Source: Klebsormidium nitens
Taxonomy: Eukaryota > Plantae > Klebsormidiophyceae
Reading direction: 5' to 3'
NCBI GenBank assembly: GCA_000708835.1
Contig: DF236971.1
Location: forward strand, 248,001-312,000
DNA: 64,000 nucleotides
Shown: piece by piece, positions 17,927-33,100 of the stretch
Layout of the letters: the number at the start of each line of letters is the position of its first letter
Position numbering within the stretch: the first letter of the stretch is position 1
The notes under the pieces: generated by a model
Databases searched by the model: none
Told to the model about the DNA's origin: nothing
Seen by the model: only the letters and a program-made list of their open reading frames with translations
Position numbers and translations under genes: made by a program

Positions 17927-21713
<3,787 letters not shown>

Positions 21714-23162
21714 GCGTTTCTACTTCTCAAGAAGCGACTGACTTTTGCAAAAGCATAACAAGTGTTCTGCTCACTGAAAGAGGATCGCCTGATATGAATC
21801 TCTATTGCGCAAGTCATGAAATAGCTCGACATCTCAATGTGAGATACACAGAGGTTGTGCTTGATTGCTAAGGTTTTTCATTGTCGCAGAGAGTTTTACC
21901 CCAATAGTGGATGCTTGCATAGAGATTTTTGGCGTGCAGACAAAGTTCCATACATGAGCATCACTCGATCCTCATGTCCATAGACTTAGTACTGCTTTAG
22001 CCCCTCTCTAGGCCTTTAGTAGCCAGGTATCATGTGCTTCAAGGAATACTGCATGAGACTCAGTATTCGGTGAATAAAAGTTGCTCAATGTAGGAGTTTC
22101 CGGTCGCATGTTGAAATCATGCATGATCCTGTTTTCTGATTCTGATCATGCACGCCTTTGATGCGCACGTCGGCTTCAAGACAATTGCAACCATCCGACC
22201 TTGCCCAAATGTGCCAAAATGTCCGAGCTACCCGGATGGTCAGACGCCGAAGGCCGAGACCATGACGGTTGTGGTCTCTTTTCGTTTTCGCCGTAGCAAA
22301 ATACTCTAAGGCCTAAGGCTTCTCATGGCATACATATGTGGTTTGTGTTTCTTCTACTTCTACTTCTTCTTCTACTAGTGCTTTTGTGTACTCCACTTAA
22401 CATTTGCAATGCCGGCCTTGCACCGTACCCACCATTGCTACATTGTCCTCAAGACACACTACATTCTCCTTCTCTCCTCGATCAACACGTACACACTCTC
22501 TAAAAATCGTACAAGCTGCTCAGCATGTCAGCAATGTACTTGGGGGATTGGGTGGATTGGGGACTGCAAATTGGAATTGGAGATTGGGTGACATGGCGAC
22601 TTGCTACGCTGGGGGCCAGCCCGCCTGCAGTCTGATAACGTCGGTGCATTATGCATTGCATGCATGGCATTTAGTAGCTACTGACCCTGAACCGTTCGAT
22701 GATGTCCCTGACTCGCTCGATGGAAGGTGGTGCATGCACTCGGGATCCGCTGCTGCATGCGACTGTCGCTGCTTGCTGATTTGCGGGTCACGTGGCCCCT
22801 AGCTAAGCAAGCGAGGAATCCGAGGATGCCGACAGGCTACAATGGCGTTCGAGTTCACAGTGGTGAGAAGTCTCGGATCCCTTTAGAGCTCAAGCTCTGG
22901 TGGTGAATGCAGATCAAGCCCTTCAGGGTTCATTTTTGTAGGGGGAGGAATATGAGTTAGAGATGGTCGTTCAGGCCTTGGCAGTGGGGCGCCCGCTAGG
23001 GGCCGCCCCTGGAGCAATTAGGAGCTTTGTCAGGGCGCTGCATGCGAGGTACGGCGCTTCCTGACGTTCCTCTCCTCTGTTTCATATCACTAGGAACCTT
23101 TTTTTGAACCTTTGAGGACTTAATTGGCTCCCGTACGCACTGCATGCTTACTGCATGCTTAC

Positions 23163-23879
23163 TGCGTCATTCCAGGGCAGCCATCGCTGCAACTGGTGAT
23201 GATTGCAGCATAAGGGGTTGCAAATATTGTGGTCTCTTCTCCTTTGTACTTCTGATCTGTGGAGGAGCTGTAACAAGCAAGGTCTTTCAAAGCATTGTCA
23301 AGTCAGCTCGAGTGCCATTCTGAGGTTTCCAAGCCAGTGGACAGTTCTAGTATTCTATCTTTTGTTTTGACAGTCAAGCTTGGCAAGTTTACTTGATTGA
23401 TCTGTGCCCCTTCAAAGCGGTGCTAGAAACACCATGTGGGCTGTCCAGATGCAGCCAAGATAGACAGATCTAGAAACATTACGTGGCACTCCTGTCTGGG
23501 AGTTGTAGCCCATTGGAGATCTTCCAAATAGGCAGAGCCTACTATATCCACAAATCTTAGGGCAAGAATTTCAGCACTGCAGCAGTTTTGAGGAGTGAGC
23601 TGATTAACATTGAAAGTGTGAATGCTGGGTTTTTGCACCGTCAACTGTCTTGACTACCTTGACAGAAGGGGTTTTTTCAAATGGTTGGATGTTGGTCGTT
23701 GCGCCAAAGTAGTCTTCAATTAGACTGTTAGTTGACCATCTACATTTGTCCTCGGACGTTTCATGGTTCCAGTCATTTGGTCTGGATTGCTTTGCAAAAT
23801 CCGTATTGAAAGCTAAGTAGGAAGCTGCTAAACAGAGATTGTCTCGTTTCGTCTCCAACAAGCGCTTTGTCACCCTCAC
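23163..23879 (-). CDS. Possible multi-exon gene or fragment of unknown function
   Basis: Three stop-free segments (..-23658, 23599-23483, 23267-23163) joined by GT-AG phase-0 junctions. No start codon found, and it abuts the 5' end of the + strand membrane gene. Confidence 0.3.
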
Positions 23880-23906
23880 TCTTGTTCCTCTGCTCCTGTT
23901 TTTCAG

Positions 23907-26900
23907 GCCCCTTCCAGTCCCCAGTGCCCGAAGACTCCCAAGTGTTAGACCTGCTTCCCGCGTCTATGCTTCTTCTCATTTACGCCCCACCAAGCCCTTT
24001 CTCAAGCGCTTACACTTTCGGGAGTCAGCCCCTTTGAACACCCAAATCATGAGGCGTTTTGCACTGCGCGCGGGTTCGAACAAGGGTGGGAACACGCCCG
24101 TCGATGAGAAAAGGGCCCCCGACGGCTCGCCCCCGAAGGAGGAAGCGGATCGGAGACTGCAGCAGGAGGGGGAGGGATGGTGGAAGACGGAACCGGAAAA
24201 GAAAGGGGAAACGGACGCCATGGTCACATGGCCCTCGGAAAAGATTACCGAGGTCTGGAAGGTGTTTTTCAAGCCCAACATGGGGTACACCGACACGTTC
24301 GGGTTTTCGGTGCCGATGCGTAAAACGGACGACAACGTGAGTACCATAGTTCTTTGGGGCGTCCTGGTTGCGGCATCGGGAGATTGGCTGATTATCAATG
24401 TCTGATTTGTTTTTGGAGCGCAGCCTTTCTTTGCTCTAGTCCTCTGCGGGCTTTTCTAGACTTCTTGATGTGCGATCAGAGAGTCAATTTTGATGGTTGG
24501 GCGGAAGAAAGCTTGCAAGCAGAGGCAATCAAGCTGTGAAGAAGCCCCTGCGTGGTTGCTCGGGAGACCTTCTCTGAACGCCATTTCCGTCGGGCGACGA
24601 TGATCTGTAGCTCGAACAGAGCGAAAAGGCGGAAGAATGATGAGCTTTTGGAGATTTTCAGACGAATTGTTTGCGAAGGACCGAGTTGAAGCAACCAGGT
24701 TCGGTCGCCCTCCCTCTATCGAAGTCTGCAAAGTCTTTTCCTGTATTTACTCGACTCACTGTGCTTGTGCCTTCCTCGAGTTCTTTGAGATACGACACTG
24801 CAACGTCCTTCTTGCCCTTACCTCCTCTGTTGCATGTCAATCTCAATCCCTTCAGATCCCCTCCTCCATTAATTTCAGATATTATTCACTTTCTCAGATG
24901 AACGGCGTTTGTGGTGCCTTCCCTTAACACGAGCCTCTGGAGTTTCCAAAGACGGAATCATATCCGCAATTCAGTTCCCCCCTGCATCCACAGAAAACGG
25001 AATCAGATTCGTTAAGCTGGCTTCTGACTTCTTTTACGTGGTGCAGCGCTCCCCCGAGGAGCGTGCAGCGGCTAGGGCGCGTGCGGCGGAGGCCGCTGTC
25101 AACATCGACGATGCGGAGCGCAGGCGGCGCATGCTCCTGGGGCTGATTCTCCTGGTGAGTGACGTCACTTGAAGTGCACTCGGTAACCTCCACGAAGTCT
25201 TTGACAGCAGTAGATAAGGACACCAGAGTTGTTAATAGCCTCATCATGCCTGCTCCATTCTCCCCTAAACCGAAGCAGCCGTGGTAATTTTCTTTGATAC
25301 GCGTCTTGAAATGAACAATATCTGTTGGGTGTGTCAGCCGGATCCACTTGGGCCGAATGTAATGCTCGATCAAAGGACTCTTCTCGTGCTCGCCGTATGT
25401 TTTGAGGAGGTTGTCAGATTGAAATCTGGCGCTTCACTTGGTTTCTGTGAACAATCTTTCCGCAGCAATATCACCGTGATTTGCCCGAACAGCCGTATTC
25501 TCCGCTCGGTTTCGCTGTCTTAGTCTTCAAGGAGACAACTTGTCTGTTTTATGTTGGATTAGATTCACACTCCGTTGTTGGGTTTTAGTGCATCGGCTTG
25601 GAGCCGTTTACCTTCCTTCACAAGAACGATCGGGCCGGTTCCTTCTCCAACATGATAGGTCTGTGCATTCGGTTGCGTTCCCGTTCCGTTGTGCAGGGCG
25701 TGAGCGGAGTTATCGCCACGATCATGGTTCAAAACCGCGCGAGCCCGTGGGAGCGTTTGTATATTCTGCCCATCTTCTTCCTGGGCGGCGCCGAGTTCGT
25801 GTCCGGTCTGACGGGTCTCTGATCCATAGCCTTTGTAAGTTTCTCTTAGCCCGAAAACGCTTTTGTTGTTGTTGTAGAAAGTGTCTGTAAGTTTCTTCGG
25901 CCTCAATAAGTTCTCGTTCTTTTAGGCAGTGATCGCTTGTCTCCGGTTTGACGGGTCTCTGATCCATAGCCTTTGTAAGCTTCTTCACCCTCGCATCAAA
26001 AAGCCCTCGTTGTTCCAGGAAGTGATTGCTTGTCTCTGATTTGACGGGTCTCTGATCCATAGCCTTTGTGAGTTTCTTCAGTCTTCGAAAGCTCTTGTCG
26101 CTCAGGGACTTGCTTCTTTGCTCCCGCCTTACGGTTCCTTGAGTTATCGCGGTTGAGACTTTTCTCAGCCCCAGAGATCTCTTGTGCCCTACTGCACTAG
26201 TGGTCGCGGGGATTTCAAAAATGTGGTGGAAAGCCTTGCGTAGTGGCCGTCGATATATCTCGACATTGAAGGTACCCGTGCTACAGTATCTGCCAAAAGA
26301 CTTGCTTTGCCTGTATCTACGATTCGCTCGTCCGAAAACGAAAGCGATAGGTCGTTTTTGGCTCTTCCTTGCGCCGAAAGCCAAACCTTTTTAAAAGCTG
26401 AGGCCTTGTCAAGCGCGTCGTTATCAGGAATGCCTCTCATTTCGCGGATGGTACTGTTGCTGACAAATTCATCGCCGTTTTCAAAAGAGGCACCGCTACA
26501 AGAGGGACTTCAGTGCTCAGCGGCGAGTCGCCAAAATGAAGCCTTTGGAATTGAATCCTGACTTCCTCTAGTCAAGCTTTCTGAACGTGGATTTGTGTCC
26601 ACTGCAGGCCAGTGTCTGGGATGTGGACGGCACTGGCATGCAAAAGGTGGACGACCCGGCGGTCGATATGCGCATTCGGAAGGTGGGTTAACCTCAGAAC
26701 CTCAAAACCCGGATCCGGAACTTAGAAAACTCTAGAACTCCAAAAGCCTTAAAGCTCATCAGCCTTAGCTGCGTGTAGCAGTTTGCCTACTGAACATCGT
26801 TTGCTGACGAGCAGAAGTTGAACCATGTCACCAGTTCTTTCATCGAGCGACGCAGATGCTTTCAGCAATTTGCCGGCTCATCATCGTCTGCTTTTAGGAA

Positions 26901-27573
26901 AGCTGAGCGAGTTTGTCCTGGTCATCTTGTAATCCGATATGTGACTGTTCTCGGCTGATCGCGCTTGCTTGTTTTTAGAATGTTGTCGCGTGGTTGCACC
27001 CATTATTGCGGATGAGAAAGCCCCCGTAAAGGCAAATCAAAGCTGTCCATCGTGGTCCATCTCACAAAATCCGTGGTTCAAGCTTCTGTAGGACGAGTAC
27101 TCTGGAGGAGCGCGTGTGGGAAGTCAGAAAGCAAACTGCCGTTCTAACCAATCTAGAATTTTGTGCAATATTATCTGGAGTTTTCTCCGTTTTGAAGGAG
27201 TCAACGTGAGCAATTCCTCTCGTGTCCCTGGACGAACATTATTTATTTCCTCCTTTAAGCAATTGACGTGCGCCGCCCACAAAGCGTTTCTGATCCGAGT
27301 AACTGTAGCGAACTGCTCAAAGTAACGCCTTTCTCCGTCACTCTGCAGAAAGTGGTTGTCTTCGTACTAAGCTACTCCCTTCTCTGTCTCCTGGTTGTCG
27401 GGCCATTTGCTTTTTGGTCACTGTAACCCGGTTGGAGGGTCGAGATTTAGAGAAGATGTATGTAGACGCCTCAAAGCTAGTGTTTTCTGGTGCAGAAAGT
27501 GGTTGGTTTCGTCTCGTTTGGGGCGGTGGCTTCGCTGTTCGTTATTGGGGCGTTCTGCTTCTACCCGCTCTGA
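23907..27573 (+). CDS. Putative membrane selenoprotein (in-frame UGA = Sec at 25820-25822)
   Basis: Exons ~23907(or ATG 24049)-24336, 25047-25154, 25697-25834, 26608-26682 and 27496-27573, all joined in phase 0 by GT-AG. Product ...NIDDAERRRRMLLGLILLGVSGVIATIMVQNRASPWERLYILPIFFLGGAEFVSGLTGL-U-SIAFASVWDVDGTGMQKVDDPAVDMRIRKKVVGFVSFGAVASLFVIGAFCFYPL*. SECIS 48 nt after the stop. 5' end unresolved. Confidence 0.88.
25789..26075 (+). repeat. Three tandem copies of the UGA-containing exon end plus splice donor
   Basis: TGACGGGTCTCTGATCCATAGCCTTTGT(A/G)AG occurs at ~25809, ~25949 and ~26042. Confidence 0.9.
27349..27426 (+). CDS. Duplicated alternative terminal exon of the selenoprotein gene
   Basis: CTCTGCAG acceptor at 27348, then KVVVFVLSYSLLCLLVVGPFAFWSL*TAA. 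Same 25-aa length and phase as exon 27496-27573, and alignable with it. Confidence 0.6.
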   Translation, partial: KVVVFVLSYSLLCLLVVGPFAFWSL

Positions 27574-27621
27574 TAGAGGTCTCGTGACCAGTAGCTTGCA
27601 TGACTCGGTGCGGTAGGCAGC

Positions 27622-27698
27622 GTAATCCTAACCCCCATGACTGCTTCTCCCGAAAAGAGCTCGTTTCTTGGGAAAAGCACGAACTCGGTTAGGATTAC
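27622..27698 (+). promoter_or_regulatory. SECIS element (eukaryotic type II)
   Basis: Helix I GTAATCCTAACC/GGTTAGGATTAC (12 perfect bp). Core ATGAC (27637-41) opposite CGAA (27680-83). Helix II TGCTTCTCCCG/TGGGAAAAGCA (11 bp, 1 mismatch). Unpaired AAA (27653-55). Apical mini-stem AGAG/TTCT. Confidence 0.92.
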
Positions 27699-28496
27699 CT
27701 GACCAGCTGCAAGTGGGTTAGTGCAAGCTAGGAAAGTGAAAAGTTGGCAGACAGTCTTGTACGATAGTCAATTTAATAAATGAATCAACCTACCATTTTT
27801 CAAAAGCCTCCCTATCCTCAAGCTGGCAGTCCAACGGTTCCTGAAGTACCGGCAATCTGTGCGAGTTGCTCGCAAGTGTGGGTATCCCACCAGTGAGGGT
27901 GAATACAATTAGATTGCTGCTTGCATAGATGCATATGTTCGCGATGACATAATCTTCGACGTCTTGATACATTGAACAGAATTTGTTATCCTTGCGTCTA
28001 ATTGACCAAGTACACTGAAAGCATCTCATTGTTGAAATTATGGTTGTGGCAATATCAGCCCGATGTTAGGCCGGCAATTTGGATAGGTACATGACATTGC
28101 GCTGCATATGATGACGCGAATGTTAAACCATACGGACGTACATCTATATGTGGTCAGCCTATTCACAACTTGGTCGGGCAGGTTCACGATTATGTGCATA
28201 GGGTGGATGACAGCAACTACTGTGGTACTTGCAATTTTCCCTGAGGTGTCCACTCATTGTTTGGAGGGCGTCGTCGATTCTTCCTCACATGCTCCCTCTA
28301 ATCCGCTGTCTTGAAATTCAGAAGCCCTTACTTCTAATACTTTCTACTGAAGCAATCTTTTAAGTGTGGAATCGCTATCTACTCAGCTCTTTGTAGTATG
28401 CGGATTCCGGCTTCACGAGATGCTGAACGGATTGGGACTCTGAGATAGATTTTCAAGCACAGCTTTCCTACCTTACAAGGTGCTTTGACAACAACC

Positions 28497-30134: not shown

Positions 30135-33100
30135 CTAGCGTAGGTCGTTTTCCTGCTCGCTCTCATCGACAGCGTCATCCTGCGGGGCTGGCACGTCCCC
30201 AAAGTCTAGCGTCTTCGGCGACCCCATTAGCGACTTTGCACCGGGTGACGTCGCCTGGTAGCCGCCCTCCCGTTCCTTCCGCGCCGAGCCGCCCTCCCGC
30301 CGTTTCGTTGCGGCGGGTGCTTTTTCCGCTGCGAGTGGGGCGTGAACTAAAACCGGCATCGCCCATTCGGCCCTCTCGATCCTATCCTGCTGTGCCCGCC
30401 TATCTAGTTTCGCTCCGTCCGTTCGCGCCTGCGGCGACGCCAAAAACTCGAAGCGGAGCGTCCACTTGACGTCGACCAGGGGGGTCGTAAATGACTGTGG
30501 GGCGTCCCCCGGGATGGTGAAGATAAAGTGGGTGTGAATGAGGTCGGCGGACAGCTCGTGGTACTCGGTCTGTACCTTTGGGATGATTTGAGAACCGGAG
30601 GGGCCGCGGCGGGAGGGGTGCAGGAAGGACGGGGTGACGATTTCTTGCGTTTCGAGCGTCACTGACACCTGCGGATGGAGGGAGACAAGGACAGGGTCAG
30701 CAGAATCATAAACGCGGCGCAAAATGGTGAATTCTTTAAAGCCAATCTGGTTGAGAAAGTCGAATGGGTGTCGAGATCTACGGAAGCAACCCACGAATCT
30801 GAACCGCAGCATCTCCGCATGGCCTCTTCAAAACGTGGACAGAACAGAACAGAGGAGTAAACGCCGTTGTCCGACAGCCGCAACTTTGTAGGAGATCGTC
30901 TCGACATTCCGTCGACTACAGACTATGTCAGTCGGCATCAGTGTTAGGTTGGCTAGGGTGAAGCATGCCGTGTGTGTGAAGTCAGCTTTGTTCAAGAAAC
31001 AATTCTTTGACTTGGTTCATTCCTATAGTCTTAATCTTCTGTTTGGGTAGCTCAGTTGGTTAGCGAAAAGGACTGAAAATCCTTGTGTCGGTGGTTCAAG
31101 TCCACTCCCAGACAAGAATGGCTCTTCTCGCCTTGCGTGGGAGCAGTCAATTATAGCTCTTACACTAGATGACCCCAGGTGACCAGAGCCCCGCCGGCAC
31201 AAATCCGATACCGGGAGAGAAGACGAGAACAAGGAATCGGTAAGAACATGGACAGAGAAAGGGGCAGGAAAGGAAAATAGCAAACAGTCCGACCTTGAGA
31301 CATCGCCGCTCGCCGGGCCGGTGGTCGCTGAAGTCTAGGGTTCCCGAGACTGCGTCCCCCAAAGTGTAAACAGGCTCCGGGTTTCGCGGAGAGAAGCGGA
31401 CCAGCAACTGGTCCCCTATTCGGATGTTGTACGTCCTGCAAAGAACGGCCGTCCATTGAGGACGCCACCGTCCGAATGTTTGAAAGCAAAGGTCCTCAAG
31501 TAAAAGCAATAAAAGATTGCAGTGTTGACGCAGCTCTTCCTCACTGCAGAAAGACTCAGGCAACGGAAAGCAACCTTCCAACCCATGCATCTCCGACGCT
31601 CCTTGTAACACACCAGACGCGTCTACTAAGAGACAGAACAAATGCGCAGTGGATACATCCGCAAGTGCTAGCCGTCAGGTTAATTGCGCTGTGCATCGGA
31701 CGGAAAGAAGCCCAGCGAGCGTCCATTTGAGCAGTCTCCAATCGAACTTCGACCGCGAAAAGAGGGCGTGAAGACGGCGCAATCCTGCAAGTACTCGGTC
31801 TTGGCAACCCGGTTTACAGAACCAAACAGGCGGCCGCTCTCTGCTTGAAAGGGTGAAGGAACCTCTTGAAAATGCTCAGTTACCTTCCCCTTATAGCGGA
31901 GAGCAAAGGCGAGGGGGGCGGGGAGGACATGTCGTCTGAGTCGTTCCGCGCTAAGATGCCCGGAGCGGGCGGAATGGGGGTGCTAGTGAAAGCGCGCAGG
32001 TCGAGGGAGCTGGCCCGCTCTAGTTCGGGGGTGCCGTTGCCGCTCTTGGACGCAATGGGGGCGTCCGCCAGCTCTGAGAGTTAGGGTGGGAGAGGATGAG
32101 GGAGATCTTTAAGCAGGACGTCCGGAGAGTTACTAAAGATAATGTCCTGGCTTCCTTACTCGCGGTTCCTCTTCCTGATTCAATCAAATGATTTTCTTGT
32201 TTCTTCTTGCCAATTGGCATCCAGCGGAAACCCATACTGTGGACACTTACTTTCCTGAGGGGAATGAGAGGTGAGAACAGCAGTGGACTCCGTCACAGAT
32301 CGGCAGAAGCAGTCTCAGGGCAGCCTTGGATGACGAGAAGGACTCGACATCCCATTCTCGCCAAGCTCGCAAACCAGGGATTGATTCCCGGACGTTCAAT
32401 GTTCTCGTGACGGTCTTAGAAGTCACTGGCAAAGCTCAACCCAGCAGTAAAGCAGGATGAGCGACGAGAGCGGGCACCCTTATGGCGTGGACCGTGGGGG
32501 ACTGTTCCGTGGAGATAACAAGAAAACGAACAGACTCAAAAGAGTCGTGCCTTGACGTTGGAGGCCAGTTTCGGAGCACGTTGCACCAACTCTTGACAGG
32601 GACCAACAGACCGTGCTAGGAGCCACACAGCTTCACACCTTGCGAAAACACACTGCGATTGCCATTACATTCATTAGAGCCAGAATGAGCAGTCAAGCCG
32701 CGAACCAAAGCGCAGGCAAGAATGGACAAGCCGAAAATCTCAACGAAGGTTTCGAGAATAAAGTGGTTATACCTGTGCCGTTGGACTGCGTGCGGGATGC
32801 GGGGATGCTTTGCGACCCTCCTAGGAAGAAGGCTGAGGGGGATCCCCGTGAATCCAGTGGAGATCCGGGGGGGAAGGGTGTCCGGTCGACCGGCAAAGAA
32901 ATTGCTCTCAAGGTTGGGGACTTGGCGGGGACTTCTATAGGCTGCGAGGCGGAGGCTTCGTTTCGGGGGGGTGGATCACCGTCGTCTTCCTCCCCCCCGG
33001 AGAGGGCCTCGGCAGCAGCAATCCAATTCGACCGGGCGGTCTTTTCGCGGCAGAGGATGCCAATCTCGACCGGGCTGGTCGGGACGATGCCTGGAGAATT

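Follow-up and report, generated by a model that had tools for sequence, protein, structure and literature searches.

Around the hairpin at positions 27622-27698 of the window (the whole 64-kb stretch of Klebsormidium nitens DNA that was analysed here), there are no long open reading frames (ORFs), and the gene that carries it is therefore interrupted by introns. The translation of its second exon is a 100% match to K. nitens KFL_000220370. Transcript contigs from public runs of four studies (X1, X5, X6 and X7, those of X6 and X7 being identical) were compared with positions 23500-28300. Their RNA origin is concluded from the removal of the introns, the run label 'RNA' being only a guess. The contigs are joined at GT..AG junctions (24336/25047, 25154/25697, 25834/26608, and either 26682/27349 or 26682/27496), and when spliced they extend through the hairpin to 27781, 27822 or 28028. 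The mRNA thus defined has six exons (Table 1), with the hairpin in the last exon, in the 3' UTR of both isoforms. The contigs of isoform 1 stop at 27781, just beyond an AATAAA at 27775-27780. The original prediction had placed the hairpin on the same strand as, and downstream of, a gene with an internal UGA, and the spliced, RNA-derived contigs show both features; RNA coverage of the element within the 3' UTR, which had been put forward as a check, is found in both isoforms.

Table 1. Coordinates in the window of the exons, the predicted selenocysteine (Sec) codon and the parts of the predicted SECIS element.
Feature	Position	Strand	Basis or remark
Exon 1, CDS part	22963..23048	+	from ATG 22963; contig 5' end maps to 23017-23046; N-terminus of P0001 agrees
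Exon 2	23907..24336	+	RNA contig pieces, GT..AG joints
Exon 3	25047..25154	+	RNA contigs; joint read with cut +1
Exon 4, bears the UGA	25697..25834	+	RNA contigs
In-frame UGA, predicted Sec codon	25820..25822	+	spliced ORF
Exon 5	26608..26682	+	RNA contigs; joint read with cut +2
Last exon, isoform 1	27349..27781	+	stop TAA 27424-27426; RNA contigs
Last exon, isoform 2, alternative acceptor	27496..28028	+	stop TGA-TAG 27571-27576; RNA contigs
SECIS element, form 2 (predicted)	27622..27698	+	sequence, fold, pattern scan, covariance model, covariation
SECIS helix I	27622-27633 with 27687-27698	+	12 perfect Watson-Crick pairs
SECIS 5' loop CCC	27634-27636	+	sequence
SECIS core, AUGA opposite GA	27637-27640 opposite 27681-27682	+	in register, base of helix II
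SECIS helix II	27642-27651 with 27670-27679	+	ten stacked positions
SECIS unpaired AAA	27653-27655	+	12 nt after the core UGA
SECIS mini-stem, 3 bp	27656-27658 with 27666-27668	+	AGA/UCU

In both isoforms the spliced ORF is 304 codons long and contains a single in-frame TGA, at codon 250 (codon 174 if counted from an internal ATG at 24049), which is followed by 54 open codons. The hairpin begins 195 nt past the stop of isoform 1 and 48 nt past that of isoform 2, and its core lies 375 nt and 228 nt, respectively, from the UGA. In 1996 Martin et al. reportedly found that the SECIS has to lie some 50-110 nt or more from the UGA, and by this measure both distances are adequate. The public model of KFL_000220370 (P0001, 323 aa) has exons 1-3 in common with the RNA-supported ORF and sidesteps the UGA by means of other splice sites and a change of frame; the model is thus incorrect for exon 4 and all that follows it.

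Several other traits of the gene were observed. The 3' end of exon 4, comprising the predicted Sec codon and the GT donor, occurs three times (25799-25844, 25939-25984 and 26032-26077), the two further copies lying within intron 4 and being 93% and 89% identical. Only the first donor is in use in the RNA contigs, and the copies in intron 4 could be decoy or alternative donors. The alternative acceptors of the last exon (27349-27426 and 27496-27573) each lead to a different hydrophobic helix at the C-terminus, KVVVFVLSYSLLCLLVVGPFAFWSL or KVVGFVSFGAVASLFVIGAFCFYPL, the two being equally long. RNA-derived contigs show both isoforms, relatives can be aligned with the isoform 2 type only, and in isoform 1 the second helix copy turns into 3' UTR upstream of the predicted SECIS. 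At the other end of the protein, the 75 residues that precede the internal Met at 24049 (encoded by 22963-23048 and 23907-24048) have a high content of R, S, A and P and resemble a transit peptide for an organelle, and similar N-terminal extensions are present in many homologues.

On the forward strand, the sequence of 27622-27698 reads GUAAUCCUAACC / ccc / AUGA / c / UGCUUCUCCC / g / AAA / AGA-gcucguu-UCU / u / GGGAAAAGCA / c / GA / acuc / GGUUAGGAUUAC. The 12-bp perfect helix I that had been predicted was borne out, all of its pairs being Watson-Crick, and it closes an asymmetric internal loop of CCC(A) versus ACUC. The A-UGA/GA core motif is likewise present and in register and could form tandem sheared G·A pairs, and the unpaired AAA and the apical mini-stem are present as well. 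The '11-bp helix II' of the original prediction is slightly generous, because there is one mismatch (C27647·A27674, the only one in the helix) and the eleventh pair is only a G27652·U27669 wobble; a helix of ten positions, or eleven with the wobble included, still stands. The minimum-free-energy fold has an energy of -37.7 kcal/mol (z = -5.6), and none of 200 shuffled sequences was equally stable. This fold adds about five outer pairs beyond helix I, so that the arms reach 17 bp with bulges. It also pairs the AAA motif in part, and both this and the C·A mismatch of helix II count against the SECIS reading.

We scanned both strands of the 64 kb with our own SECISearch-like pattern, which demands (A/G)UGA, AA 10-13 nt later and GA in register, together with a helix II of at least 9 pairs with at most one mismatch and a helix I of at least 6 bp. 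The hairpin at 27622-27698 was the sole match. From first-order Markov controls, 0.065 sites per window are expected at the 6-bp minimum for helix I; at a minimum of 10 bp, no site appeared in any of the 200 controls. The view that a chance match is very unlikely is thus upheld by a sole site in 64 kb against 0.065 expected.

The element resembles the eukaryotic SECIS of form 2, or type II (RF00031; SECISearch consensus), in its location in a 3' UTR, its helix I and internal loop, the A-UGA opposite GA (the non-Watson-Crick quartet), a helix II of about 10 bp, the unpaired AAA 12 nt past the core UGA, the extra mini-helix with a small apical loop, and a distance of more than 200 nt from the recoded UGA. 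It differs in that its helix I is unusually long and perfect, in that it has no reportable score under the Rfam model, and in that the nucleotide 3' of its GA is an A, so that the first quartet position could be a U-A pair. A U·U is commoner at this position.

A score under a curated covariance model was another check put forward with the original prediction, and Rfam SECIS_1 gave none: there was no match at the gathering threshold in the whole 64-kb window, nor at E <= 10 in 27300-28000. The same model also missed all the family candidates in five relatives (L001 and L009-L012). For this reason we tentatively read its silence as a low sensitivity of the model for algal SECIS elements, and treat it as uninformative and not as a refutation.

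Related sequences indicate that the codons past the UGA are maintained. In three close relatives (L001, a metatranscriptome cDNA contig, and the genomic contigs L003 and L004), the TGA is retained together with the ORF that follows it and the hairpin, and the TGA at the Sec codon is also kept in L009-L013. Four contigs (L002, L005, L006 and L007) were left out of the comparison of the 3' end because they end before the 3' end of the gene. Over the 54 codons past the UGA, 25 nucleotides distinguish K. nitens from L001, and third positions account for 22 of them; at the codon level, 20 changes are synonymous and 3 non-synonymous. This pattern of substitution points to a clear purifying selection on the post-UGA ORF. 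The more distant cDNA contigs L009-L012, with a protein identity of 45-52%, have the TGA followed by exactly 54 conserved codons, in the pattern SIA.A.VWDV.G.GMQ...RKK and then a hydrophobic helix. A scan of metagenomes with a codon-degenerate pattern around the UGA recovered only L008, which is the same as L001, and nothing further.

When the 3' UTR of K. nitens was compared with those of relatives, the hairpin was the sole alignable island. Within it the AUGA, the 5' half of helix II, the GAAA and the GA are invariant (AUGA and GA being unchanged in all the relatives compared), and the helices change in a compensating manner. The mini-stem is AGA/UCU in K. nitens, GGC/GCC in L001, L003 and L004, and CAGGAC/GUCCUG in L011, with two-sided changes in all three pairs; in helix I, four of the seven modelled pairs covary. 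When a covariance model was trained on the four Klebsormidium-type sequences, it detected the element of L011 (E = 0.006), which differs in the sequence of helix I and of the mini-stem. In the resulting alignment, which consists of five sequences, three of them close, and which was fitted to the model, 96.9% of the cells pair and compensatory double changes are found in 10 of 20 pairs. None of 500 shuffled controls reached any of these measures, and slid registers pair at 33-50%. By pattern scan, a SECIS-like hairpin is found 60-240 nt past the stop in L009-L012, and those of L009, L010 and L012 have AUGA, 12-13 nt, AA(A) and GA. With a second covariance model (R2), the candidates of these last three were the best plus-strand matches of their contigs, at non-significant E-values (0.5-2), so that their status as SECIS candidates comes from the pattern scan.

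A HMMER search of 1.84 billion representative proteins, run exhaustively, returned 49 matches, of which 30 were aligned. About 26 of the 30 end exactly at the Sec codon, after ...S[GA]xxGL, and two skip it by mis-splicing (Coccomyxa BDA48335.1, here P0012, and P0013). P0032, a JGI gene call, has a 'W' at the Sec position where the DNA has TGA (L013:649-651), and this 'W' is an artefact of the genetic code used by the gene caller. Ostreobium quekettii CAD7701472.1 (P0043) has a Cys at the Sec position (...SGRAGL-C-NLAQAGFWDVDGAG). UGA in most homologues together with Cys in one is, at the level of sequence, the classical Sec/Cys signature.

Lobanov et al. 2007 (PMC2375036, supplement 2) described selenoproteins of Ostreococcus tauri and O. 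lucimarinus under the name 'hypothetical protein 3', with the sequence ...NIDDEERARR...PLFFALGFVGSAKSGL-U-NIAQAGVWDVEGAGLQKIEDE... and the Sec region GSAKSGL-U-NIAQAGVWDVEGAG, also given as ...GSAKSGLUNIAQAGVWDV[ED]G.... The K. nitens protein reads ...NIDDAERRRR...FFLGGAEFVSGLTGL-U-SIAFASVWDVDGTGMQKVDDP..., its Sec region is VSGLTGL-U-SIAFASVWDVDGTG, and the peptide across residue 250 is ...LTGL-U-SIAFASVWDVDGTGMQK. The two were compared by direct reading of motifs and by a HMMER link through P0023, which matches the Klebsormidium-type query with E = 4.6e-6 and whose PLFFALGFVGSAKSGL is identical to that of O. tauri. The family motif S[GA]xxGL-U-[NS]IAxAxVWDV[DE]G and the upstream NIDxxERxRR are both found in the K. 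nitens protein. Given the P0023 link and these common motifs, the host gene is assigned, on sequence grounds, to the known, functionally uncharacterised 'hypothetical protein 3' family of selenoproteins. Both have NIDxxERxRR, two hydrophobic helices, S[GA]xxGL-U-[NS]IAxAxVWDV[DE]G[TA]G, a C-terminal hydrophobic helix and the same Sec position. Compared with 'hypothetical protein 3', the protein of K. nitens is extended in its N-terminal region (WPSEKITEVWKVFFKP...), as are otherwise only the closer relatives P0008-P0015, and it has two alternative C-terminal helices that arise from the alternative last exons. This family may be the one that Jiang et al. 2020 (PMC7539508) named 'Hypo'.

Two other assignments were considered and rejected. 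Green algae have a further small selenoprotein with several membrane passes, the membrane selenoprotein MSP (Lobanov et al. 2007), but its Sec motif in the published alignment, PALVGSUCWPLL (PMC2375036, supplement 2), bears no resemblance to the K. nitens protein. The MSP motif, PALVGS-U-CWP, sits in the first transmembrane region, and MSP is a separate family. The Pfam family YgaP-like_TM (PF11127 / DUF2892), in which the Sec would be aligned to a conserved Cys, gave 13.5 bits (E = 0.08) against a cut-off of 25.3 bits. This sub-threshold match was confined to P0004:140-233, and neither the Cys form P0043 nor P0032 matched the family.

Taken together, these data make it very probable that the hairpin at 27622-27698 acts as a form-2 SECIS element from within the 3' UTR of the mRNA of a K. 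nitens selenoprotein (KFL_000220370). Indeed, the type II SECIS that had been proposed for the 3' UTR has all the sequence-level hallmarks of form 2 and is supported by the transcript, by conservation and by covariation. The observations behind this reading are the structure of the transcript, the position of the hairpin in the 3' UTR, the conservation of the UGA, the purifying selection past it, the Sec/Cys correspondence and the covariation of the hairpin. From what is established for characterised eukaryotic SECIS elements, we infer binding of SBP2 and insertion of Sec at the UGA. The AUGA/GA quartet would form a kink-turn bound by SBP2, which would in turn recruit eEFSec·GTP·Sec-tRNA(Sec) to ribosomes arriving at the UGA. 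This codon would then be read as selenocysteine, residue 250, and translation would proceed for 54 further codons, through exons 5 and 6, to the true stop. According to Liang et al. 2019 (PMC6627142), K. nitens (= K. flaccidum NIES-2285) possesses the whole of the Sec machinery.

Three other explanations have to be weighed. If the UGA were a real stop, the hairpin might be an unrelated stem-loop involved in stability or regulation in the 3' UTR, or a chance inverted repeat. The absence of a score under Rfam SECIS_1 would agree with this, as would the fact that the loose pattern, with its 6-bp minimum for helix I, extrapolates to about 100 chance matches in a genome of roughly 100 Mb. However, the 54 codons past the UGA are under clear purifying selection and keep their length and sequence in distant relatives, the helices covary around an unchanged AUGA, AAA and GA, and published members of the family are selenoproteins, with one homologue having Cys at the UGA position; we regard a real stop as very improbable. 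The hairpin might also be an inverted repeat derived from a transposon (MITE-like) that landed in the 3' UTR, given that its arms are perfect over 12 bp and reach 17 bp with bulges. Such an origin is hardly credible, as the window contains no second copy of the hairpin and as three related sequences have the hairpin at the orthologous site, where it has undergone compensatory changes and not decay.

A SECIS-independent read-through (near-cognate Trp, Cys or Arg), with the hairpin as a generic stimulator, deserves a hearing insofar as the case made here is built on sequence and transcript data, and insofar as the gene caller of P0032 put a W at the homologous TGA, albeit as an artefact of its genetic code. 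Nevertheless, known stimulators of read-through directly adjoin the stop, whereas a specific SECIS signature (AUGA, 12 nt, AAA, GA) is found here at 228-375 nt. In addition, the Sec machinery is present in K. nitens (PMC6627142), the Ostreococcus members of the family were reported as selenoproteins (PMC2375036), and the sole non-UGA homologue has Cys, the usual counterpart of Sec. Generic read-through thus seems highly improbable, and decoding of the UGA as selenocysteine under the control of a form-2 SECIS is the reading that we retain.

Liang et al. 2019 (PMC6627142), by homology, and Jiang et al. 2020 (PMC7539508), in a de novo approach, both credit K. nitens with only two selenoproteins. 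The KFL_000220370 locus may already be among these two. We suggest only tentatively that the gene might be an uncounted selenoprotein of K. nitens, the third or a later one, in a widespread family of membrane proteins that nearly always use Sec and that public gene models nearly always cut short at the UGA. Should it be uncounted, the selenoproteomes of streptophyte algae would be under-counted, and the family, which is possibly targeted to an organelle, would be a good candidate for asking what land plants lost with selenocysteine. The public gene model can be corrected, since it gives KFL_000220370 as a frame-hopping protein of 323 aa where a selenoprotein of 304 aa is predicted here. A predicted SECIS and selenoprotein are also added for a streptophyte alga that stands near the land plants, a lineage from which selenocysteine was lost, and attention is drawn to a family of small membrane selenoproteins whose database sequences are systematically truncated. 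The mechanism is a textbook one, with a canonical SECIS in a new, or at least mis-annotated, member of a known family; the value of our study lies in a sound call and a useful fix of the annotation rather than in a new kind of biology.

Elsewhere in the window, a tRNA-Phe (GAA) gene at 31040-31115 (+) was the only Rfam match at gathering level. The upstream neighbour of the selenoprotein gene is an ORF at 19530-20846 (+) with Peripla_BP_2 and DUF5522 domains, and this neighbour is syntenic with the selenoprotein gene in the contig of a relative (L002:2624-3994).
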